From NCBI GenBank assembly GCA_965644315.1, contig CBFFRQ010000113.1:1-11792 (forward strand): a stretch of 11,792 bases of DNA, read 5' to 3'. Of the stretch, positions 1 to 11,700 are shown in pieces. Position 1 is the stretch's first letter; each line of letters opens with the position of its first letter. The notes under the pieces are model-generated. The model was given only the letters and a program-made list of their open reading frames with translations. It was not told where the DNA came from and did not search any database. The position numbers and the translations under genes were made by a program. The DNA is from Caecitellus pseudoparvulus (lineage: Eukaryota; Protista; Bigyra: Bicosoecida).

Positions 1-310
1 CGCGACAACGCAGTCACGTGCGCTCACGAGCAGCGCCATGCCACGCCACAGAACTGCACTCACTGTTACTTCGAGTGTTGGAGAGCCAACTTGGCTGTGC
101 TGCAAAGGCCAATGGCGGCTGGCTTGCCAACCACAGCTCGTGCAAGAGTTGACTTGCGGAAATTGACAAGTCGACAATACACGACACAATCACGCAGTGT
201 GCGCCGCAAGAGGAGTCAGACGCAGAGGAGAACCGGGCACAGGACGGTTGGCACAGGTGCGTTGATATAATTGGCTTGGGACGTTTACGCGGCGTGTGGA
301 TTGTGGCAGA
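1..310 (-). promoter_or_regulatory. Copy A of the conserved promoter/5'UTR cassette (CCAAT box, Inr-like motif, GTGAGT donor), pointing left out of the window
   Basis: Collinear with 4367-4680 and ~8210-8540. Shared + strand landmarks: CACTCACTG (57-65; on - strand CA|GTGAGTG, donor G at 63), TGCGGAAATTGA (155-166), GCAGTGTGCGC (194), GTTGGCACAGG (247-257), ATTGG (270-274; CCAAT on - strand). Positions 1-65 align without gaps to 4367-4431. Confidence 0.75.
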
Positions 311-629
311 GCGCAGAGTGTCGCGAACTGTTTGAGGGGGGCTGACTGACGTTGGAGGGAGGGGTGCGGGGACCGCGGTGATGCGGACGGGCTCAAGGCC
401 CAAATTGGCAGTCCCATACAAGGTCATGAACTGCTTAATGGCCTTTGTGGGCATTTATATGCCGGGAAGGCTCACAGACAGCCGAAAAAATGCCGAGAAA
501 GTGCAATGCTGCACCATCCCCGATGCGACGGGCGCATCCCGCCGCGCGTCTCGAGCTGGTGGGCGGCGCAGTGGTCGCCCTCAAGAGTGCCCAGGTGGCT
601 CAAGCCGCTCTCCACAAGCAGCCTCCCCC

Positions 630-1049
630 ATGGCGGCGGCAGCAGCCGCAGCAGCTGGTGCAGCGTCCGAGGCTCTGGAGGGGGATGCCCTGGTCCTTCG
701 CGTGGCCTCCTTCTTCACAGACTTCGGCTCCAACCTGCGCAGCGAGCACCGACAGGCGTCCCTGCAGGAGCTGGAAGACACCCCCGTCGGGAAGGAGCTC
801 GTGACCTCCCTGCAGGAGATCCAAGCCTCCACTGGCCGAGGTGAGGCCCTCATCTCGGAGGCCTTCAAGGTGGCCAAGGATGCCAAGGACGCTCAAGCCC
901 GAGAGGACGCTGCCCTGCTGCTGTCCCTGGCCTGGGCCAAGGACGCCATCACACAGGACGACGTGGTGAGCGGCCTCGCCACCCACCTCGCTGGCTACAA
1001 GGACTTCAAGGCGTACGACTTGCCCAAGGTGGACGTGTACTTGGGAGTG
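630..1049 (+). CDS. Exon 1 of an MA3(MI)+W2-like domain protein (eIF4G C-terminal-like, ~395 aa after splicing)
   Basis: ATG at 630 (CCCATGG), after which codons are strongly GC3-rich. Translation RVASFFTDF..QASLQEL..EALISEAFKVA..AREDAALLLSLAWAKDAITQDDVVSGL..YDLPKVDVYLGV follows the helical pattern of eIF4G/PDCD4 MA3 domains, including the D-[LIV]-P..YL motif. It ends at a GTACGT donor at 1050. Confidence 0.8.
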
Positions 1050-1265
1050 GTACGTGACGCGCACGCCCGGTGTCCGTGTGTGCACTTGCATTGGGATGAC
1101 GATTCGCGTACTTTCTGACACCTCTGTTCTGAGCGGCTTGCCGCCTTGATCTTCACTCCGCGACGAGGCCTACTGACCAAGTGCCGTGCACACACGTCCC
1201 CGCCCGCACCCGCCTGCACCCATGCCGGTCCGCCTCACTCCTTCCGCTCTACCCTCTCCTCGCAG
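1050..1265 (+). other. Spliceosomal intron, 216 nt, phase 0
   Basis: GTACGT donor at 1050. A pyrimidine tract CTCTACCCTCTCCTCGCAG ends at 1265. Removing it joins ORFs 378-1118 and 1146-2033 in frame, deletes the stop at 1116-1118 and restores the MA3 C-terminal helix (DLPKVDVYLGV|LFAPVINNG). Confidence 0.88.
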
Positions 1266-2033
1266 CTCTTCGCCCCCGTCATCAACAACGGCAGCATGCA
1301 CGTGGCCACCCTGGTGCGGCTGTGCAGCATTGGCACCGCATTCTTCGCTGGCTCCGGCTTGGCCCTGCTTGGCACCATGTTGGTGGAGGCCGCCAAGGTG
1401 AACGAAGACGGCCCTCCCGTCACCATCCCGCACGACGTCAGCCTCATGCCACTGGCTGGCCCCTGCACCTTCGACACACGGGGCTTCACCAAGAACATGG
1501 CGGCTGCCCTGCAGTGCGACGCCATTGCCTCGCATCCTGATGCGGCCCACCTGCAGGCTCTGCTGGCATGGCGCCAAGAGTCAGACCGGAAGGGTGCCGA
1601 GGACATCGCCGCCGCATGGAGCACACACCTGTCAGGTGCCAGCGCCCCCGCCGCGGCCAGTGCTCTCCTGCAGCTGGTCGGTGATGCCGGCAACGCTGGC
1701 ATGGGCGGCAATGCCGGTGCCGCAGACGTCGAGCAGGTGCACAAGGTGCAGGCCGCCGTGAAAACCATCGCAGATGCCGGGCGTGCCGCTGGAGCGGAGG
1801 AGTTCGCGGCGTTCCTGCTTGAAGGCACTGGGCGTTACTGCCAACTGGAGGACATGCACAGCGCCGACGCTCGCCCAGCAGTCATGGGGGCCTTCACAGC
1901 GTACTTCCTGGAGCAGGGCATCGTGACCAAGGAAGAGGCTGCCAAGTGGAAGGCCGCCAAGACTGGCGCCTTCCTGTCAGCGGGCCACGCCACCATCGTC
2001 AAGGCTGCACGTGCCGCCATCTCCAAGGCCTGA
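1266..2033 (+). CDS. Exon 2 of the MA3+W2-like protein
   Basis: Open to TGA at 2031-2033 with high GC3. The C-terminus VMGAFTAYFLEQGIVTKEEAAKWKAAK..GHATIVKAA resembles the W2 (eIF4G/eIF5/eIF2B-epsilon) AA-box region, but the terminal W-L-acidic tail is missing. Confidence 0.8.
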   Translation, partial: LFAPVINNGSMHVATLVRLCSIGTAFFAGSGLALLGTMLVEAAKVNEDGPPVTIPHDVSLMPLAGPCTFDTRGFTKNMAAALQCDAIASHPDAAHLQALLAWRQESDRKGAEDIAAAWSTHLSGASAPAAASALLQLVGDAGNAGMGGNAGAADVEQVHKVQAAVKTIADAGRAAGAEEFAAFLLEGTGRYCQLEDMHSADARPAVMGAFTAYFLEQGIVTKEEAAKWKAAKTGAFLSAGHATIVKAARAAISKA

Positions 2034-2487: not shown

Positions 2488-2503
2488 TGCTCGCTGGGAG
2501 CCC

Positions 2504-4327
2504 TCACCATGTCAGGGTTGGTGACCTTGAGCCATCGTTGCCGCACCACACTGACCCGTCAGCACGCTTTACAAGGACACCTCCCTTGGGACTCTGCGTC
2601 CTCGCAAAGACAAGAGCCGTGGGCATCTCAGCCTGCTTGCCAAACCCACCACCCCGCATCCACTTAATGATATCAGGGTGCACACCCCCACACAAGCTCT
2701 GGCGGTACACGTGCAGGCTCCCCAGGCCCAGACCACGGGGGTGCAGAGTCAACCACCCAGCATCCAAGGCGGTGTTGATGCACTGCAGGGCAGTCGGAAT
2801 GGTAAGGGCAGGTGCCGGGCGAGCGGCACCGTAGCCTGCTGCAACTGCAGCCTGTCGTGCCTGGCGGGGGATGTTCACTTCCAGGGTACTTTCCAGCTCT
2901 GTCCTGGTCACGGTGTACTGCCCAGAGCGGAAGGTGAGCAGGGTGTCCTTGGCCAGCTGCACTTGCTTGGCATCTGACAGGATCTCGTGGAAGGTATCCA
3001 GCAGAAGTTTGGGCATAGGGACAAGCTGCTCCAAGTCAGCCTCCCCTGCAGCTTCCTCCGTGGCTACTGGCCATGTCCATGGCTCCCGACATGCTTGGAC
3101 AAGCTTGTGTACTGCTTTGATGAGGTCTTGGGGTGTGTGCCCGAACTGCTCCATGATGTGTACCAGGAAAGCGTCCAGCTTCTCTGCAGAGCTTGCTCCA
3201 GCATCCCCCTTCCAGCCCCCCAGGCACAGCTTATCGAGATCCCTCGCCACCCGAAGCGCTGCTTCTGACGGCTGCTGGCCAAGGTGGCGCTGGAAGAGGG
3301 AGAATGTCCTGTCCACTTTCCTGCCCGCGTGTGTGAGGAGGAAGGCCATGAGGGATGTGCCGCTCCAGGCAGGCCCCCCCACGCGAATGTACCTAAGCAA
3401 GGATCCTTTCCAGTTCTTTCGCAGCTCGTGATGTGTGAAATGGGGCGGGAACTCATGAGGCCGCCCGTCGTAAGCGAACAGCTGCTGAGCCCGCTGGAAG
3501 GCTGTGCACAGGACCACGCCAACAGCAGGGTACTCCAACGACAGTAGCCGCCGCAGCTGCGTGCACCACAGATCTACACATTCCCGAGTGAAGTGGTCAC
3601 CCTGGAACAGGCAGTCGGCTTTGTCAATGAGCACAATGACGGCGATGTTGGCTTCTCTCAACACGGCGCTCGCCAGGCACAGGTGACCCGTCGTGCCAGC
3701 ACCAGTCAGAGCTGCACACACCCGACGCGACAGCTCTGCGGAGGCAGCGCTGCCGGTACCGCCTTCTGCTGACACCGCGGCCAGAAGATGCTCCACATTT
3801 ACCGTCTGGCGAGGGCCGCCACGTGCAGAGCTGGCCAGCAGCCGCAGCACCTCCGTGACAGGCGCGTACTCTTTCAGCTTTGAGAGCTTTCCTGCGACTG
3901 ACCCGAGCAGCCACTCATAAAAGCTACTAGTGTCAGACGGCTCACGGGCCCCAAGGTCGATGCTGCAGCACAGGGTGTGCCCGCCACCCGCTCTGGGGTT
4001 CCTCACAACCACCTGCCTTGCAAATGCCTTCTGCAAGCGGGTCTTCCCAACGCCGCTGGGACCTGTCAAGAGGTAGGCCTGGGGCCCTGTGGCCTTACTG
4101 TGCAGTTCCTCCACCATATACGTCAGATTTTGTAAGGCTGGCCGCAGGTGGTCTATGGGCACGAAGGGGTGGGTGGTGTCGGCTGCCATGTCAGCCAACC
4201 AGGCTTTGTCATCCTCGGTCAATGCTTGATATGTGCCTACGCGCTGCCCACCAACACACATCTCCTCAAAGGGACCAGGTTGTTGTGTGCCACGCAGGGG
4301 ATGTGCGAGAGCCGTTGCTTCTTCCAT
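2504..4327 (-). CDS. Short paralogue, 607 aa: P-loop NTPase-like protein lacking the nuclease core, with degenerate Walker B (probable pseudo-ATPase; may be a young pseudogene)
   Basis: Uninterrupted ORF from an ATG 2 nt after a TCACAG acceptor. Walker A GPSGVGKT at 4040-4063. Walker B reads VIVLIDKAD (K codon at 3620-3622). Near-identical to the long copy at a constant offset of 3776. Homology breaks at ~2527 and the ORF stops shortly after. Confidence 0.75.
   Translation of the reverse strand: MEEATALAHPLRGTQQPGPFEEMCVGGQRVGTYQALTEDDKAWLADMAADTTHPFVPIDHLRPALQNLTYMVEELHSKATGPQAYLLTGPSGVGKTRLQKAFARQVVVRNPRAGGGHTLCCSIDLGAREPSDTSSFYEWLLGSVAGKLSKLKEYAPVTEVLRLLASSARGGPRQTVNVEHLLAAVSAEGGTGSAASAELSRRVCAALTGAGTTGHLCLASAVLREANIAVIVLIDKADCLFQGDHFTRECVDLWCTQLRRLLSLEYPAVGVVLCTAFQRAQQLFAYDGRPHEFPPHFTHHELRKNWKGSLLRYIRVGGPAWSGTSLMAFLLTHAGRKVDRTFSLFQRHLGQQPSEAALRVARDLDKLCLGGWKGDAGASSAEKLDAFLVHIMEQFGHTPQDLIKAVHKLVQACREPWTWPVATEEAAGEADLEQLVPMPKLLLDTFHEILSDAKQVQLAKDTLLTFRSGQYTVTRTELESTLEVNIPRQARQAAVAAGYGAARPAPALTIPTALQCINTALDAGWLTLHPRGLGLGSLHVYRQSLCGGVHPDIIKWMRGGGFGKQAEMPTALVFARTQSPKGGVLVKRADGSVWCGNDGSRSPTLTW
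2528..4231. repeat. Duplicated coding block, copy 1 (pairs with 6304-8007)
   Basis: Constant offset of 3776 with no indels seen. Alternative-frame ORFs are also identical (3284-3547 vs 7060-7323; 3693-3920 vs 7469-7696). Confidence 0.95.
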
Positions 4328-4329
4328 AC

Positions 4330-4429
4330 CTGTGAGTCAATGCGAAGATCGTGCTTGTGTCGTTTGCGCGGCAACGCAGGCACGAGCGCCCGCGAGCAGT
4401 GCCACGCCATACCATGAGACCACACTCAC
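4330..4429 (-). other. Predicted 5'UTR intron of the short paralogue (100 nt)
   Basis: On the - strand: CA|GTGAGTG donor at 4429 and TTGACTCACAG|GT-ATG acceptor at 4330. The upstream exon has an in-frame stop near 4470 and no in-frame ATG after it, so it is non-coding. Confidence 0.7.
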
Positions 4430-4680
4430 TGTTGACGCTAAGTGTCGATGTGGATGATTTGCGGTTTAGTCAAAAGAATTGGCCGCAGATTCGCCAGACA
4501 CGGCGCTGATAACGTGTGGCCTGCGGAAATTGAGCAGCCACCAGCTCAAAGCGCAAACGTGCAGTATGCGCAGCGAGAGGGCTAGCCAGTGGCAGGCAGA
4601 GGTGGGAAAGTGAATGTTGGCACAGGCAAAGTGCACAGGATTGGCCGTGGGTAGGTGCGCGACATGTGGAATGTGGCAGG
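4430..4680 (-). promoter_or_regulatory. Copy B of the promoter/5'UTR cassette
   Basis: TGCGGAAATTGA at 4522-4533 (- strand TCAATTTCCGCA), GCAGTATGCGC at 4561, GTTGGCACAGG at 4616 and ATTGG at 4640. Spacing matches copies A and C to within 1-2 nt. Confidence 0.75.
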
Positions 4681-5162
4681 GTGCGGAGTGTTGCTGGGGG
4701 GGGGGGTGGCTATGGCTCGAGGGGGGGGGTGCCGTGAGCGCAGTGAGACAGGTGGGCGCCCTGGCCCACTTGGCAGTCTATGTGCTGCCTCTGGACCGCG
4801 TGGAGGGCATGCTGATCGTTGATTGGTCGGGGAGGTGCACCTCCAGCCAGGGTGCGGCTGGCACTTCCGGGAGGCGGGTGCGGCAGGCCAAGGCACCTGT
4901 CACATGGGCAGGGTGTGTGCGGCTGAGTGAGGGATCCCATGGTGCAGCTTCAGTCTCCCTCGCGTGCACTGGGACCGTGCTGAACCCCTGCTTGGTCATG
5001 TGGGTTGTACAGACGGTGTGTGTGTGTGCCAGTCAGTGCGAGTTGGGTACCGGGCGACTGGACTGCTCTTGACCCCCTGACTGCAGAAGCCTTCCTGCAG
5101 AGTGCCGGGTGTTAGAGGCTACGTCGCGCACCCAGTGGGCGGGTGGAGTCCCAGGAGGGTTC

Positions 5163-5392
5163 CAGCATGCTGCAAGTAGCAGCAGAGCAGCTGAGCAGCC
5201 CAGTTCAATCTCCACAGCAGCTGTGTCGCGCGACAGATCTGGGTCAGCAGCTGTGAGTGGCCTGCAGCGGGTGAGGAGTGCAGGGTACAAGGCACGGCCC
5301 CAGCGTGAGAGACTGGGTGCACATGGTGCTGCTTTGCATTCCATCTGCCGCGCTACAGCCTGCCTCGTTGGTGCCCGTTGGGTCGGCGAGAC
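5163..5392. repeat. 3' flank repeat, copy 2 (end and downstream of the long paralogue)
   Basis: Direct repeat of 2260-2487. It includes the long ORF's stop codon at 5353-5355. Confidence 0.92.
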
Positions 5393-8205
5393 GCGCCACC
5401 GAGGGCTCTAACTCTACGCCTTGGTCCTTCATGTAGCTGGGGGACAAACGTGCCATAGGCCCTAAGTCTGCGTACCGGTCCTCCAAGTTGCTGGGGGGCA
5501 TTCCTGCTGGCCACACAAGCACACAGCATCACGCCCCTTCTAGCACATACAACCCGAACCCTCCCCCAGAAGTCCTCCAGATCGAGACCATCAAAGACCT
5601 GGACGCCCTTCTTTCGCGCTTTGCGCTTTGTGTCGGGTGATGGTACGTGTGTCATGGCAACGAAAGCTCCACCATCCTCGAAGCGGACAGTTTCACTATC
5701 GAAGAACTCCTTGAGCTTCACTGCTACCAAGCGCTTGTCATCCAACACACCCCAGTCGATACTGTGAGCAATAATTGCGACAGCAATGATGTCCCACACC
5801 GCCCTGACCACTGGCAGGTGAATGTTCTCCAGATCAGCTGCCTTTCCAATTTTGAAGTTCTTCACACCCAAGAGTTTGGCAACTGCACCCCGGGTGCAGT
5901 TACTTGCCGTTTCTTCCTGCTTCTCGCTCCTGAGTGTATCTTGAGTGGCACGCTTAACCTGAACTCGCGCGACCTTGCAAGACACTTTCTGCCCAGCAAC
6001 ACTGGGAAGCACTCCGATAAGGTCAGCTCCGTTTTCATCAGGCGATTCTTTCACCCAGACACCACCCTGAGTAAGGGTCAAGCGTACCCTCAGTTCTGTA
6101 GGAGCCATCTTCAGCGACTCGCACGCAGCCTCTGCACGGGCAAGCCAGCTCTCACCATCTTCATAAGCTGCTCCCCCTCCCCCAGCGCCTGCACCTGCAT
6201 GTGCAGTGGCTCTGCTCTCTGCATACAAGGCCTCTGATTGACGCGTGCCTCTAACGTTCGATCTCCGCCGCCCAACGAACAACTCCACAAGCTCTCCAGC
6301 TTCTGAGTCATCGCTGCAGCACCACACTGACTCGGGGGTGGGCCGCACAAGCACACCTCCCTTGGGACTCTGCGTCCTCGCAAAGACAAGGGCCATGGGC
6401 ATCTCGGCCTGCTTGCCAAACCCACCACCCCGCATCCACTTAATGATATCAGGGTGCACACCCCCACACAAGTTCTGGCGGTACACGTGCAGGCTCCCCA
6501 GGCCCAGACCACGGGGGTGCAGAGTCAACCACCCAGCATCCAAGGCGGTGTTGATGCACTGCAGGGCAGTCGGAATGGTAAGGGCAGGTGCCGGGCGAGC
6601 GGCACCGTAGCCTGCTGCAACTGCAGCCTGTCGTGCCTGGCGGGGGATGTTCACTTCCAGGGTACTTTCCAGCTCTGTCCTGGTCACGGTGTACTGCCCA
6701 GAGCGGAAGGTGAGCAGGGTGTCCTTGGCCAGCTGCACTTGCTTGGCATCTGACAGGATCTCGTGGAAGGTATCCAGCAGCAGGACTAGCGAGGGGGCAT
6801 ACTCGCTCGAGTCGGCCTCCCCTGCAGCTTCCTCCGTGGCTACTGGCCATGTCCATGGCTCCCGACATGCGCGAACAAGCTTGCGCGCCGCGTTGGCGAG
6901 ATCTCGGGGTGTTTGCCCGTACTGCTCCATGATGTGTACCAGGAAAGCGTCCAGCTTCTCTGCAGAGCTTGCTCCAGCATCCCCCTTCCAGCCCCCCAGG
7001 CACAGCTTATCGAGATCCCTCGCCACCCGAAGCGCTGCTTCTGACGGCTGCTGGCCAAGGTGGCGCTGGAAGAGGGAGAATGTCCTGTCCACTTTCCTGC
7101 CCGCGTGTGTGAGGAGGAAGGCCATGAGGGATGTGCCGCTCCAGGCAGGCCCCCCCACGCGAATGTACCTAAGCAAGGATCCTTTCCAGTTCTTTCGCAG
7201 CTCGTGATGTGTGAAATGGGGCGGGAACTCATGAGGCCGCCCGTCGTAAGCGAACAGCTGCTGAGCCCGCTGGAAGGCTGTGCACAGGACCACGCCAACA
7301 GCAGGGTTCTTCAACGACAGTAGCCACCGCAGCTGCGAGCACCACAGGTCTGCACATTCCCGTGTGAAGTGGTCACCCTGGAACAGGCAGTCGGCGTCAT
7401 CAATGAGCACAATGACGGCGATGTTGGCTTCTCTCAGTACGGCGCTCGCCAGGCACAGGTGACCCGTCGTGCCAGCACCAGTCAGAGCTGCACACACCCG
7501 ACGCGACAGCTCTGCGGAGGCAGCGCTGCCGGTACCGCCTTCTGCTGACACCGCGGCCAGAAGATGCTCCACATTTACCGTCTGGCGAGGGCCGCCACGT
7601 GCAGAGCTGGCCAGCAGCCGCAGCACCTCCGTGACAGGCGCGTACTCTTTCAGCTTTGAGAGCTTTCCTGCGACTGACCCGAGCAGCCACTCATAAAAGC
7701 TACTAGTGTCAGACGGCTCACGGGCCCCAAGGTCGATGCTGCAGCACAGGGTGTGCCCGCCACCCGCTCTGGGGTTCCTCACAACCACCTGCCTTGCAAA
7801 TGCCTTCTGCAAGTGGGTCTTCCCAACGCCGCTGGGACCTGTCAAGAGGTAGGCCTGGGGCCCTGTGGGCTGACTGTGCAGTTCCTCCACCATATACGTC
7901 AGATTTTGTAAGGCTGGCCGCAGGTGGTCTATGGGCACGAAGGGGTGGGTGGTGTCGGCTGCCATGTCAGCCAACCAGGCTTTGTCATCCTCGGACATTG
8001 CTTCGTAGCTCCGAAAGACATCGCCCATTGCGAGCTGTGGGCCTTGTCTTGCCATTGCCTCGGCAATTCTTTGTGAGCGCCGTGGTAGTGGACCCCCAGT
8101 GTCTTCCTTGGATTCGCGCTGTTGGGTTCGCAAGGGCAGCCCCGCAGCGCAAAGTTCCTCGAAAGAGAACGGGGCGCTAGACCCGGCACCAGCAGCAGCC
8201 GCCAT
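5353..8205 (-). CDS. P-loop (AAA+/STAND-like) NTPase fused to a C-terminal Mrr-like PD-(D/E)xK restriction-endonuclease-fold domain; Crinkler/RHS (CR) effector-like, ~950 aa
   Basis: Walker A YLLTGPSGVGKT (7816-7839), Walker B IAVIVLIDDAD (7396-7401) and sensor-2-like YGQTPRDL (R at 6904-6906). Nuclease motifs: GKQAE helix, ESPDENGADLIG (D at 6022-6024), RVQVK (5953-5961) and FVAMTH..KARKKGVQVFDGLDL, the order seen in Mrr_cat-type domains. The start is moved from the track's GTG at 8286 (a splice donor) to the ATG at 8205. The extreme C-terminus is uncertain. Confidence 0.8.
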   Translation of the reverse strand: MAAAAGAGSSAPFSFEELCAAGLPLRTQQRESKEDTGGPLPRRSQRIAEAMARQGPQLAMGDVFRSYEAMSEDDKAWLADMAADTTHPFVPIDHLRPALQNLTYMVEELHSQPTGPQAYLLTGPSGVGKTHLQKAFARQVVVRNPRAGGGHTLCCSIDLGAREPSDTSSFYEWLLGSVAGKLSKLKEYAPVTEVLRLLASSARGGPRQTVNVEHLLAAVSAEGGTGSAASAELSRRVCAALTGAGTTGHLCLASAVLREANIAVIVLIDDADCLFQGDHFTRECADLWCSQLRWLLSLKNPAVGVVLCTAFQRAQQLFAYDGRPHEFPPHFTHHELRKNWKGSLLRYIRVGGPAWSGTSLMAFLLTHAGRKVDRTFSLFQRHLGQQPSEAALRVARDLDKLCLGGWKGDAGASSAEKLDAFLVHIMEQYGQTPRDLANAARKLVRACREPWTWPVATEEAAGEADSSEYAPSLVLLLDTFHEILSDAKQVQLAKDTLLTFRSGQYTVTRTELESTLEVNIPRQARQAAVAAGYGAARPAPALTIPTALQCINTALDAGWLTLHPRGLGLGSLHVYRQNLCGGVHPDIIKWMRGGGFGKQAEMPMALVFARTQSPKGGVLVRPTPESVWCCSDDSEAGELVELFVGRRRSNVRGTRQSEALYAESRATAHAGAGAGGGGAAYEDGESWLARAEAACESLKMAPTELRVRLTLTQGGVWVKESPDENGADLIGVLPSVAGQKVSCKVARVQVKRATQDTLRSEKQEETASNCTRGAVAKLLGVKNFKIGKAADLENIHLPVVRAVWDIIAVAIIAHSIDWGVLDDKRLVAVKLKEFFDSETVRFEDGGAFVAMTHVPSPDTKRKARKKGVQVFDGLDLEDFWGRVRVVCARRGVMLCACVASRNAPQQLGGPVRRLRAYGTFVPQLHEGPRRRVRALGGASRRPNGHQRGRL
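6304..8007. repeat. Duplicated coding block, copy 2 (pairs with 2528-4231)
   Basis: Near-identical to 2528-4231 at offset 3776. Confidence 0.95.
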
Positions 8206-8208
8206 CCT

Positions 8209-8286
8209 CTGTGACAACGCAAGGTCATAGTACCACGCATGAGGATTTATGAGCCACGCCACGACATGCCGCAAAACTGCACTCAC
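8209..8286 (-). other. Predicted 5'UTR intron of the long paralogue (78 nt)
   Basis: On the - strand: CA|GTGAGTG donor at 8286 and GCGTTGTCACAG|AGG-ATG acceptor at 8209. The short copy has the same layout. An in-frame TGA at 8302-8304 makes the upstream exon non-coding. Confidence 0.7.
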
Positions 8287-8540
8287 TGCTAATTTTGAGT
8301 GTCAAAAAACCAATTTTTCGGTGTAGCCAAGAGGAATGGCCACAGGTACGCTAGATACGGCTCTTGCAAAGTTGCAATTTGCGGAAATTGAGCCTGCTCC
8401 AAGTCACACCGCAAACGTGCAGTGTGCGCCGGAAGAGGGCTAGCCAGTCGCAGGCAAGGCCGGGAAAGAGTATGTTGGCACAGGAAAAGTGCACAGGATT
8501 GGTCGGTGAAAGGCGAGCGGCATCTGAAATGTGTCCGGTT
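8287..8540 (-). promoter_or_regulatory. Copy C of the promoter/5'UTR cassette
   Basis: TGCGGAAATTGA at 8380-8391, GCAGTGTGCGC at 8419, GTTGGCACAGG at 8474 and ATTGG (CCAAT) at 8498. Confidence 0.75.
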
Positions 8541-8769
8541 TGGCCAGGCTTGATCAGCAAGTGTTGCCTCAGCAGAGCACACGGCCACCGCCCCCCTCCT
8601 GAAAGCACCGGCCCGCGCAGAGCGGCTCTTCTCCGGCTTGAAACTTATCGCATACCTGACACACATTTTGCCGGGGCATTGTCCGCACATAGAGCTTAAT
8701 CCAGTAGCTTTGATTGCAAGACACGGTGGCTCGCTCCCAGCTTGGCACAGGTCCACTCAATGGCAGGGT

Positions 8770-11700
8770 TTACGTTTTGCCTCGCTTTGGTCTGGATGAT
8801 GCTGCGGTGGCCCGATCGGCTTCGCGGGTGGCCGCCTCCTCTTCTGCCATGGCAAGCCTTTCAGCCGCGGCCGCCGCTGCTGCTGCCTGGAGCGCCAGGA
8901 GTTCAGGCTTGGCACGGGCAGCCGTGCTGCTCACCCACCCATACAAGTCCAGCAAGATCTTGTGCAGGGTCGCTGTGCTGGGACCAGGCAGCGCAGCGGA
9001 GTCTTGGGCGTCTTGCGCCACGGCCTGGGCTTCAGCGGCAGACATGAGAGCTGTGCGTCTCACGCGTGGAAGGGGCCCCAGGCCTTCCACGGGAGAGTCT
9101 CCGTGTGGGGCTTCTTCGCCCTCTTCCTGCGGAACCTGGGAAGGCAAGCGGTCAAGAAGGTTCGCTCGGCGGCGCCACAGGCCCAGCAGGCGGCCGAAAT
9201 TTACCTGTCCCCGAACATCGGACATGGCTTGAAACAGCACGCCACGCATGATGTCATCACCGTCCTTGACTGAGGCAGCGACATCCCTGTCGGCAAGAGC
9301 TGTGTAAAGCGCGACCTCCTCATCGGCCTCTCCCCGAAGTATCTGTGCGCGGGCAGCCATGTCAGACACGTACAGCGAAAGCTGAGAGCCGTGCTGTGCC
9401 GACACGTTGTGCCAGCCCACCTGCAGCCCAGTTTCACTGCGTGCAAGTGTTCTTGAAGCAGAAACAGCGGCTAGGTGCTGCTCAACCTCCGCCTCTGCTC
9501 GGCTCGCCAGTCCTGCTGCATCGCCGCCTTGAGCCGCGGCCGCTGCGGCTGCATCCGCCAATGCAACGGGCGTAGGCTTCGCGTGGAGTCCCATGCCTTG
9601 GAACCACAACCGCACACCTTCACTCCCAGCCGCAACATGGGGCAACAGCGCCGACGTTTCCGACTGAGCGGAAGTCAGGGGATCACGCCACTCGCGATTC
9701 GCTGTGAGAGTCATGGGAGGCGGGGGGGGCTCCTCACTCGCTCCTCCCCGTTTGCCCTTGCCCTTCTTGCGGCTTCGTGGGGTGCCTGCTTCCTGTGCCG
9801 GCTCTGGCTGAATCTCAGGCGATGCGGCCTCGGGACTCAGCTCAGGAGCCACAGCTTGGATCACACCTGCTGGGAGGGCGGGGTGAACATCTTCGTGCAT
9901 CACTACGCTAAGCTCCGTGCCAGCGCCAGCGTTGGGGGGCGCTGCAACTCCTTCTGATGCTGCCGAGGAAGAGCCAGGCGATGCTGCTGCATCTGACGCC
10001 GCTTGCAGCGCTAAATGCAGAGCATCCAGGTCATCATGGTCAGGCCATGCGGCGATGCCCCAGCCCTTGCCAACAGTGGTGGCGAAGGCTCTGATGTCTG
10101 GAACGGCGAAGTCTCGCCCCCCCTGGACCTCGGGTGCCCACAGATCACGGCTCTCAACATCTTCAATGTCACTGGGCGCTGCTGGGTTGTCTGCAAAAGC
10201 CTTGGACGTCGGCGAAGGGCCTGTCACACACATCCACGCCATGAATGCCCGCCAGTCGACAAGTCGGGAAAAGTTCACAGGAGGGTGAAGGGTTGCCATG
10301 GCAGCGGCAGCAGCACTCGCGCGGGCTGCTTCCAAGCGCTGCTGTGGTGATAGGCTTGTAGCCGAGCCTGCACCCGTGTTGTGAGTGCCATCCGCAGGAC
10401 TTTCTGCGGAGGTGCTCGTTTCCGTCGACGCGAAATTTGCCCCGGCAGCAGCAGCAGCCGCAGCTGGAGCGGCTGCAAGCTCTGGCACTGGGCTCTCAAC
10501 TGCAGGAGCACTCTGGCCCTCAACAAAGGCGACGTCCCAGTCGATCCAAACAGCTCCTGGCGCCGAAACGGGCACTGGCTTAACTTCATGCACAATGCCT
10601 GAACTTGTCACGTCGCCAGCGATGGGTGGCCACACACCCTGAGCAAACTGCTCCTGCACCACACTGGCAGGGGTGGACAGCTCAGCGGGCGGAGACGGCG
10701 GCTCTCCGGCTTTGCCCTCCGGCACGTCATCATGCCCTGAGACATCACTGCTGCCCTCCACACTGGGGCCTTCCAGGCAAGCCTGCAGCGCTTGATGTAA
10801 AGCGAGTTGCAGGTCTCGCCGAGGTGCCGTGGTGGGACAGGCGGCTGGCAGGTCCAGGACACTGGTATCACCCCAGGTGTGCACAAGAGCCTCCCACTCT
10901 TCGGCATCCATGGCGAGAGGCGCTTGCCTGTGAAGCAGGGGGTGATGCAGAACAACCTTGGTCCTGGGTCGAATGCCGGCGGGCTCCTCCCAGGGCCAGT
11001 CTGCAGGGCCGGGGCACAGTCTGGAGAAGCGTTGGAGAGTACTTTCCCCGGCATCGGCCTCGTCGCTTGCCTTGCCTTCTCCTGCTGCATCCCCTACTTG
11101 CTCGCTAGCACCGGCGCCCAGGGACGTTTTGCTGGTGTCGTGAATCATGCCAGCGTCTTCGGCAGAGACATCCTCCACAGGGAGCACTGAAGAGGACTGA
11201 GCGGTGGAGTCTGCTGCAAGACCGCCACTCTCTGCCCCAGCGCCCAGTACTGTGCTTGCCAGGGGTGACAGCAGAGAGCCTTGAGTGGGTAGAAGTGCAG
11301 ACAGTTGCTGAGCATCCAGTGGGGAGCCAGCGACACACCGGCGGCTGGGGCCGTGACTTGCCTCCGCGTCCATCACTGATCCCGCATCGTCTGCACTGTA
11401 CACGCTTGAGCCGGAGGGCATCCGGCGGAGGGACCGTGGGGTGGCCCCTGAAGCCTCGTCGCCCCCTTCGCCGGCGTCTGTGGCAGCATCTGATGGGAGG
11501 GGGCCCAGGCCGTCTTCATCCTCACCGTCTTCTGCCGCCTGCCGCCCACTGGCGCTGGCCTTGCGCATGGCCACCACTTCAGCGATGGTGATGCCCAGCC
11601 GTTCAGCCTCCTCTGCATCGGCCTTCGCCTGTGCTTCGCGCTCCTCCTTCACCAAGCGCTCCACTTCTTTCGCTTGCCACTTCGCGTACTGGATGCGGGC

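Follow-up and report, generated by a model that had tools for sequence, protein, structure and literature searches.

The window analysed here is the whole of C113, an 11.8-kb contig from the 30.6-Mb genome (roughly 62% GC) of the protist Caecitellus pseudoparvulus. It carries two tandem genes in the same orientation, both on the minus strand, which belong to a multicopy family: a long gene, predicted to encode an AAA+ ATPase joined to a nuclease, and a short gene that has the ATPase but ends before the nuclease. An earlier note on this DNA, made from the letters alone, had read the two as a candidate pair of an armed nuclease and a selectively disarmed twin that may act as its antidote or decoy. 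The long and short genes are built as follows:

5353-8286, minus strand: long open reading frame (ORF), 977 amino acids counted from a GTG, with the likely ATG at 8205
5353-8205, minus strand: long gene from the ATG at 8205 to the stop at 5353-5355, comprising a header, an AAA+ ATPase with lid, a winged helix, a linker and a putative nuclease domain
8011-8205, minus strand: long-type N-terminal header, with an FEELC motif and an insertion of ~44 amino acids that is not in short forms or in subfamilies B and C
6427-8010, minus strand: ORC/Cdc6-like AAA+ module, lid and winged helix of the long gene, from the fold model and motifs
7816-7839 (Walker A), 7387-7416 (Walker B) and 6898-6918 (sensor-2-like GQTPR), minus strand: ATPase motifs of the long gene
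5452-6150, minus strand: predicted Mrr-like PD-(D/E)xK nuclease domain of the long gene, from fold and conserved motifs
6010-6057 (KE..GADL), 5947-5967 (RVQVK) and 5647-5679 (EDGG..TH), minus strand: nuclease-domain motifs of the long gene
2504-4327, minus strand: short gene of 607 codons, with a short-type header, the same AAA+, lid and winged-helix module and a 54-codon tail, and no nuclease domain
4226-4327, minus strand: short-type header (MEEA..GPFEEMC), common to 9/9 short copies, with a conserved ATG
2488-2527, minus strand: deletion junction, where a 40-bp filler stands in for 911 bp found in the long gene; every short copy and an environmental scaffold have this junction
3528-3677, minus strand: divergent, apparently unconverted patch bearing the Walker B D>K difference (3611-3640)
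2978-3177, minus strand: divergent, apparently unconverted patch bearing the R>Q difference (3122-3142), with the short-lineage haplotype of the environmental copy P0001 and of contigs C26 and C123
2221-2487, minus strand: region 3' of the short gene, with homology to the 3' end and flank of the long gene (5124-5392)

The near-identity of the tandem paralogues described in the earlier note holds: aligned by blastn, 4227-2528 and 8003-6304 are 96.2% identical across 1702 nucleotides, and 531 of 575 residues agree between the two proteins. Similarity extends beyond the coding regions, at 81% for the upstream elements (4675-4522 and 8533-8380) and 88% for the 3' flanks (2487-2221 and 5392-5124). 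The 67 nucleotide differences, at a constant offset of 3776, are clustered, with 16 in 2528-2627 (14 of these in 2528-2577), 32 in 2978-3177 and 12 in 3528-3677; the divergent patches are separated by tracts of 250-350 bp with 100% identity. Walker B reads VIVLIDDADC in the long gene (7387-7416) and VIVLIDKADC in the short gene (3611-3640, codons GAC AAA), the sensor-2-like motif reads GQTPRDL (6898-6918) and GHTPQDL (3122-3142), respectively, and Walker A (GPSGVGKT) is intact in both. Thus the IDD>IDK and TPR>TPQ changes, the retained Walker A, the separate ATG and the unbroken 607-codon ORF to which the note had pointed are all present in the short copy. The note had also proposed that this copy lost a nuclease core. 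Its whole C-terminal domain is indeed gone, with 911 bp of the long gene (5393-6303) replaced by 40 bp (2488-2527), but the identification of that domain as a nuclease comes from fold and motifs, without a sequence-family match.

At the level of fold, the models describe an ORC/Cdc6-like AAA+ ATPase followed by a winged helix and an Mrr-like PD-(D/E)xK nuclease, an architecture that resembles the CR (Crinkler/RHS-type) proteins in build rather than by demonstrated membership. Pfam returned AAA_22 as the sole match, at 27.1 bits for the short protein and 26.5 bits for the long one against a cut-off of 27, and no Pfam family matched the C-terminal 300 amino acids of the long protein. Aligned sequences of 18 family members gave a model of the shared core (mean pLDDT 72), for which Foldseek ranked ORC/Cdc6 proteins and PAB2304, an archaeal ATPase, highest (E 1e-7 to 1e-5 over ~500 columns, probability 1.00 to ORC/Cdc6); these matches span the AAA+ base, the lid and the winged helix. 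The features that mark ORC/Cdc6-AAA_22 proteins are present, namely Walker A (GPSGVGKT), Walker B (VIVLIDD) and a base-plus-lid fold. In the model, a sensor-2-like G-x-T-P-[RK] motif lies at the N-terminus of the lid helix, a placement that we take to resemble that of the ORC/Cdc6 sensor-2 motif; R or K occupies the last position in 14 of the 18 aligned members, and Q or E in several copies of both forms. The guess that GQTPR is a sensor-2 is therefore reasonable, but changes there are not specific to short forms.

The C-terminal domain was modelled from 12 members (mean pLDDT 69, core 70-96). Against the PDB, Foldseek found no match to this model at E<=0.001, and a profile search of PDB sequences had no meaningful result for the nuclease and, for the ATPase, picked up P-loop stretches only. 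In the ESM Atlas, the models nearest to the domain were Mrr_cat and Card1 nucleases, and feature-based neighbors were bacterial and archaeal proteins with ATPase_2, AAA_16 or nSTAND1 and Mrr_cat. A KE...G[AG]D...QVK motif is conserved across subfamilies, and the hallmarks of PD-(D/E)xK enzymes, an alpha-beta-beta-beta-alpha-beta core with acidic residues and a (D/E/Q)xK motif, can be recognized in the model. The N-terminal header is a short FE[EK][LM]C motif rather than a catalogued CR header, having neither Ubl nor LxLFLAK. The Crinkler header PF20147 matched nothing in the proteins or across the genome, in a search that was also silent on control genomes and so of unproven sensitivity; RHSP (PF07999) had no match in the proteins at E<=1 and none in the genome, with the control genomes again silent; and PADLOC reported no significant match.

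Within C. pseudoparvulus itself, at least 44 loci (61 segments) match the long protein. Our study of copy neighborhoods covered 15 regions, with the subfamily C arrays and several copies lying outside them. In subfamily A, the closest one, the long form combines the header carrying the ~44-amino-acid insertion with the nuclease and is found on C113, C119, C31 and C53, plus a frameshifted copy on C83. The latter (L015/L017, C83:8725-11483) is split near C83:9927-9969 into two overlapping frames, with the nuclease domain still open. The short form has the compact header MEEAAALAHPLRGTQQPGPFEKMC and no nuclease, and is represented by nine copies, on C113, C119, C83, C53, C26, C35, C31, C90 and C123, and by the environmental copies P0001 and P0002. 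The family is lineage-restricted and very narrow outside its source genome: a word-indexed search of 5.8 billion proteins gave 3 outside matches, and a full hidden Markov model search of 1.84 billion representatives gave 50, many of which are 96-99% copies of C. pseudoparvulus genes from other samples, and others are full-length relatives in eukaryotic assemblies at 24-45% identity. One relative in another assembly (L047, GCA_024449685.1 contig, 6001-8973) encodes 990 amino acids at ~26% identity, with the nuclease region present, and is a single gene among ordinary eukaryotic ones (FGAR amidotransferase, CRAL-TRIO and WD40/CFAP43-like). The family thus predates its expansion in C. pseudoparvulus.

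The short form is old and has a single origin, in a deletion of ~870 bp. An identical junction with the same 40-bp filler is found in 9/9 short copies. It also occurs on a scaffold from an environmental metagenome (L046), which is 91% identical to window positions 4680-2234 and holds an intact 607-codon ORF; such a shared junction and filler argue for a single origin. After the deletion, two sub-lineages gained a stop at the same Trp codon just beyond the winged helix, one as TGA with a 6-bp deletion (C35, C31, C90 and C119) and the other as TAG with a 3-bp deletion (C83 and C53). Upstream of the tail, none of the short copies has an interruption in its core of ~550 codons; that on C123 is truncated 5' by a contig edge. 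Sequence like 2221-2487 lies downstream of nearly all subfamily-A copies examined, the exception being a truncated copy at C31:743 kb. Since subfamilies B and C carry the compact header too, it represents the ancestral state. Subfamily B also has nuclease-less members, L018 (C31:26174-27775), L020 (C105:1201-2997) and L021 (C170:30608-32161), which measure 574-596 codons stop to stop and are 39-49% identical among themselves and to the long L016, with L018 and L020 at 77%. All three are open and end at the domain boundary of the subfamily-A short form, with no nuclease remnant downstream, and another sample contains L018 again, at 98.8%. Truncation at this boundary is also seen in P0003 and in a long-header copy on C31. 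ATPase-only forms are thus both recurrent and long-lived.

Yet the short genes do not group together when their cores are compared. In a maximum-likelihood tree of the core, long and short copies pair with 100% support (C113 with C113, C119 with C119, C53 with C53 with C83 beside them, and C31 with C35), and the form label needs at least 5 changes. Set against a single deletion origin, so many changes indicate that cores have been exchanged by gene conversion. Synonymous divergence (dS) is 0.03-0.11 within pairs and 0.2-0.45 between them. In the window, the short gene carries the long-type haplotype in the identical tracts, for example ELSRRVCAALTGAGTTGH, which is also found in the long C31 copy, whereas its divergent patches still match the haplotype of the short lineage as seen in P0001, C26 and C123 (PQDLIKAVHKLVQ and EQ.VPMP are examples). 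The recipient of conversion was accordingly the short gene.

The same mosaic bears on the claim that selective disarming had made the short copy an antidote or decoy, dominant-negative against its armed neighbor. We scored variation over 17 subfamily-A sequences and 519 core columns. The second position of Walker B (residue 297; window 7396-7398) is D in 5, K in 2, G in 6, E in 3 and N in 1, inside an otherwise almost invariant 20-residue block (flank entropy 0.18), and the putative sensor-2 position (residue 461; window 6904-6906) is R in 4, Q in 6, K in 5 and E in 2; both are among the 25 most variable of the 519 columns. The nuclease-bearing C31 and C119 copies have G at the Walker B position, and the long C53 copy has Q at sensor-2. 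Conversely, the Walker B position is acidic in five short copies, and several short copies keep R or K at sensor-2. The other four long-short twins agree at Walker B (C119 G/G, C53 D/D, C83 D/D and C31/C35 G/G), and in one of them both members, the nuclease-bearing L004 (C31:843632-846310) and its twin L007 (C35:43-1824), have GTGMT in Walker A (Lys to Met) and G in Walker B, with full frames open. Among the closest relatives of the short C113 gene, residue 297 is K, G, E or N, and it is G in the closest environmental relative. Subfamilies B and C mostly have DE at Walker B (the short L020 has G) and R or K at sensor-2, from which it follows that the ancestral protein was a normal ATPase. Selective disarming of the short copy is thus not supported: both sites are hypervariable in long and short forms, the other twins agree at Walker B, and across pairs the loss of the nuclease is the only consistent inactivating change. 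D>K and R>Q both lie within unconverted patches and are better viewed as leftovers of the short lineage that conversion has yet to overwrite. Across subfamily A, these hydrolysis-related positions appear to be substitution hot spots, a pattern for which site-specific relaxation or switching of ATP hydrolysis are candidate causes.

Comparisons of substitution rates support the view that the short forms are maintained under weak purifying selection. Over a 512-codon core, the pairwise ratio of non-synonymous to synonymous divergence (dN/dS) is 0.43-0.60 between long copies and 0.45-0.68, mostly 0.47-0.66, between short ones, and in sliding windows it nowhere clearly exceeds 1 (maximum 1.05, at residues 127-151). 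Substitutions private to one copy give a non-synonymous to synonymous ratio (pN/pS) of 0.59 in short copies (59 synonymous, 104 non-synonymous; p=9e-4 against neutrality) and 0.36 in long copies. For the solo short copies, which have no long gene within the fetched 10-kb stretches (C26, C31:779 kb and C90), pN/pS is 0.58 (p=0.008). The short-specific header has a dN of 0.145 and a dS of 0.31 (dN/dS 0.47) with its ATG conserved, and is 84% identical at the nucleotide level, against 72% for the 300 nucleotides upstream; since it cannot be repaired from long genes, its constraint is not explained by conversion from them. About 3.3% of random substitutions in the short frames would create stops, so that neutrality would predict an estimated 5-8 stops over the private changes in the nine copies; the shared core has none, and no frameshift. 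Private divergence is ~2-2.6%, however, and each single open frame is thus weak evidence. With one old junction, a header of its own, open frames and a pN/pS below 1, the short gene is, as the earlier note had held, something other than the product of random decay.

All sequencing runs were searched as assembled Logan contigs, in which level, strand and transcript ends are not readable. Parts of the C113 locus are contained in DNA runs, including an independent marine metagenome. In one metatranscriptome, exact contigs specific to the long copy cover 5358-5539, 6851-7012 and 7323-7429 at a depth of 2-7, which lends weak support to transcription of the long gene. This library, the one clear RNA run, has no contigs specific to the short copy at that depth, and says nothing firm on the short gene.

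The remaining features of the window are:

4522-4680, minus strand: upstream element, repeated at 8380-8538 with 81% identity
28-71, 4394-4437 and 8251-8294, minus strand: 44-nucleotide element, from repeat comparison
14-454, minus strand: upstream cassette, with matches just ahead of the short-form genes of C26, C53 and C83
8770-11736, minus strand: 988-amino-acid Ala-rich low-complexity ORF, part of a duplicated block, with no Pfam match
378-2033, plus strand: MA3-like gene, also multicopy

Of the 5'UTR intron and promoter that the note had assigned to the short gene, what the comparison confirmed is the repeated upstream elements. Since the cassette at 14-454 matches stretches that precede short-form genes, a third family gene probably lies just beyond the start of the contig. 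The order of 988-amino-acid ORF, long gene and short gene recurs on C119, and that of the ORF and long gene on C31; the ORF exists in at least three copies (the others at C119:33834-36797 and C31:840099-843059), always just upstream of a long family gene, and on C53 and C83 the long genes are preceded by fragments of its C-terminal part. The long-short pairing, which the note had proposed to look for at other loci, is thus found again on C119, and the short gene often lies just downstream of a long one. Between C113, C119 and C31, the region of the 988-amino-acid ORF is 96-100% identical at the nucleotide level and the family genes only 75-85%. As dS is high too, this between-block divergence reflects a shuffling of old variants among copies, not amino-acid-level selection alone. 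On C83, C53 and C26, copies of the MA3-like gene alternate with family genes and, in several blocks, lie on the opposite strand; the two MA3-like ORFs tested are 94-97% and 88-94% identical in amino acids to full copies on C26, C53 and C83. Most family copies lie on small contigs or close to contig ends, a suggestion of subtelomeric location that a listing of telomere repeats did not place. One small contig (C121:1-13780) holds three full-length subfamily-C copies in a row, head to tail.

On balance, we favor a reading in which these genes form a CR/RHS-like, gene-converting family, the short gene comes from an older nuclease-less lineage and had its core overwritten by the adjacent long gene, and nuclease-less twins modulate their long partners. 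One deletion founded the lineage, which kept the ancestral short header and spread to at least nine loci and the environmental copies, and conversion from the adjacent long gene has overwritten most of the short core in the window. The long proteins may be nucleotide-binding enzymes that assemble on DNA and cleave it, probably to defend against invading DNA or as part of another genetic conflict. The twins would probably be functional ATPase/winged-helix subunits that either co-assemble with or compete against the matched long partner, and in this way modulate it. A number of observations weigh against all or part of this. The tail of ~50 codons is decaying in most short copies through stops and small deletions; several copies, including long ones, lack the Walker A Lys or a Walker B acid, and part of the family may be degenerating. 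Short cores could also give a false impression of purifying selection through conversion from selected long genes or from copies missing in the assembly. To these must be added the silence of the metatranscriptome on the short copy, and a complex prediction for the long and short ATPase modules with ATP that scored 0.00, which is no verdict either way. Finally, instead of being paralogous loci, C113, C119 and C31 could represent haplotigs, which would leave the conclusions unchanged. We consider fairly unlikely a more elaborate version, in which executor and nuclease-less twin form matched two-gene units that keep compatible cores by local conversion while the family diversifies, Walker B and sensor-2 are toggled as on/off or locked-state switches, and the twin restrains or licenses the nuclease (as self-immunity or as a sensor/executor pair) in an undescribed eukaryotic innate defense or drive system.

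The short copies could instead be non-functional relics that lost the nuclease once, possibly since extra nucleases are harmful, and whose frames look healthy through overwriting by nearby long genes. This is a real alternative, if a somewhat unlikely one. Every long gene has a near-identical short twin at low dS, the short copies have little private divergence, their tails gather stops and small deletions past the conserved boundary, and the one library has no short-specific RNA; yet the header that long genes cannot refresh is constrained, the solo copies show a pN/pS well below 1 with no long gene nearby, and the deeply diverged nuclease-less forms of subfamily B are still open. We find it improbable that the family is selfish or transposon-derived cargo without host function, spreading with duplicated blocks, of which the short forms would be roughly the non-autonomous derivatives. 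The position of many copies near contig ends and on small contigs and the conserved 5' and 3' flanks of the units would fit such cargo, as would the origin of CR-type NTPase-REase modules, which PMC5289972 describes as thought to lie in prokaryotic transposons. However, the surroundings of the units showed no transposase, integrase, terminal repeats or target-site duplications, copies travel with ordinary neighboring genes as in segmental duplication, and full-length relatives persist in other organisms. The antidote or decoy of the earlier note is, in our view, very improbable. It draws on real sequence differences, on the position of GQTPR at the lid helix, and on the adjacency and shared orientation of the two genes, and it is established that AAA+ proteins oligomerize. 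But long and short forms alike are variable at the critical positions, G or Q is found there in copies that bear the nuclease, the remaining twins agree with each other at Walker B (one pair sharing even the Walker A K>M change), the closest environmental relative of the short gene has G rather than K, and the changes sit in unconverted patches that come from the short lineage.

Fusions of an NTPase with a nuclease, which lie at the heart of prokaryotic immunity and of eukaryotic Crinkler/RHS-type proteins, raise the question of how eukaryotic cells tolerate and regulate many intracellular copies. The C. pseudoparvulus family offers a compact natural system for this question, in which nuclease genes and apparently maintained twins from one ancient deletion evolve in concert, and the family genes stand as islands of divergence inside nearly identical duplicated blocks. 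If the twins do regulate the nucleases, they would provide a testable eukaryotic case of built-in restraint on a conflict nuclease; if they do not, the family would be a clear case study of how gene conversion makes relics look alive.

Among known systems, CR proteins share the order of domains (P-loop NTPase, HTH/winged helix and REase-fold nuclease) and the variable short N-terminal headers, following the summary of Zhang et al. 2016 in PMC5289972; NTPase + HTH + REase is given there as the commonest CR-protein module. The C113 family differs in having no Crinkler-header or RHSP match, no sign of secretion and an ATPase closest in fold to ORC/Cdc6. We met no earlier mention in the literature of a dedicated nuclease-less twin lineage in CR proteins, though no search was aimed at one. 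Prokaryotic NTPase + Mrr/REase defense proteins (ATPase_2/AAA_16/nSTAND1 + Mrr_cat; Avs-type) likewise join an oligomerizing NTPase to a PD-(D/E)xK nuclease, but the C113 family is eukaryotic, multicopy and gene-converting rather than a single defense-island gene. Immune receptors may also work as sensor/helper or decoy pairs, as in plant NLR pairs, where adjacent related NTPase genes, one without the executing domain, undergo rapid recombination-driven diversification; there is no homology, and the C113 pairing may simply reflect tandem duplication. In genome behavior, the closest described analogue is trypanosome RHS, a large, tandemly and segmentally duplicated family of intracellular proteins with a nucleotide-binding motif, many truncated copies and conversion mosaics, both segmental and interlocus (PMC7563717). 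The C113 family departs from it in lacking an RHSP match and in the nature of its truncation, which would go back to one inherited deletion rather than to retroelement insertion and has left truncated forms that are open and appear to be selected.

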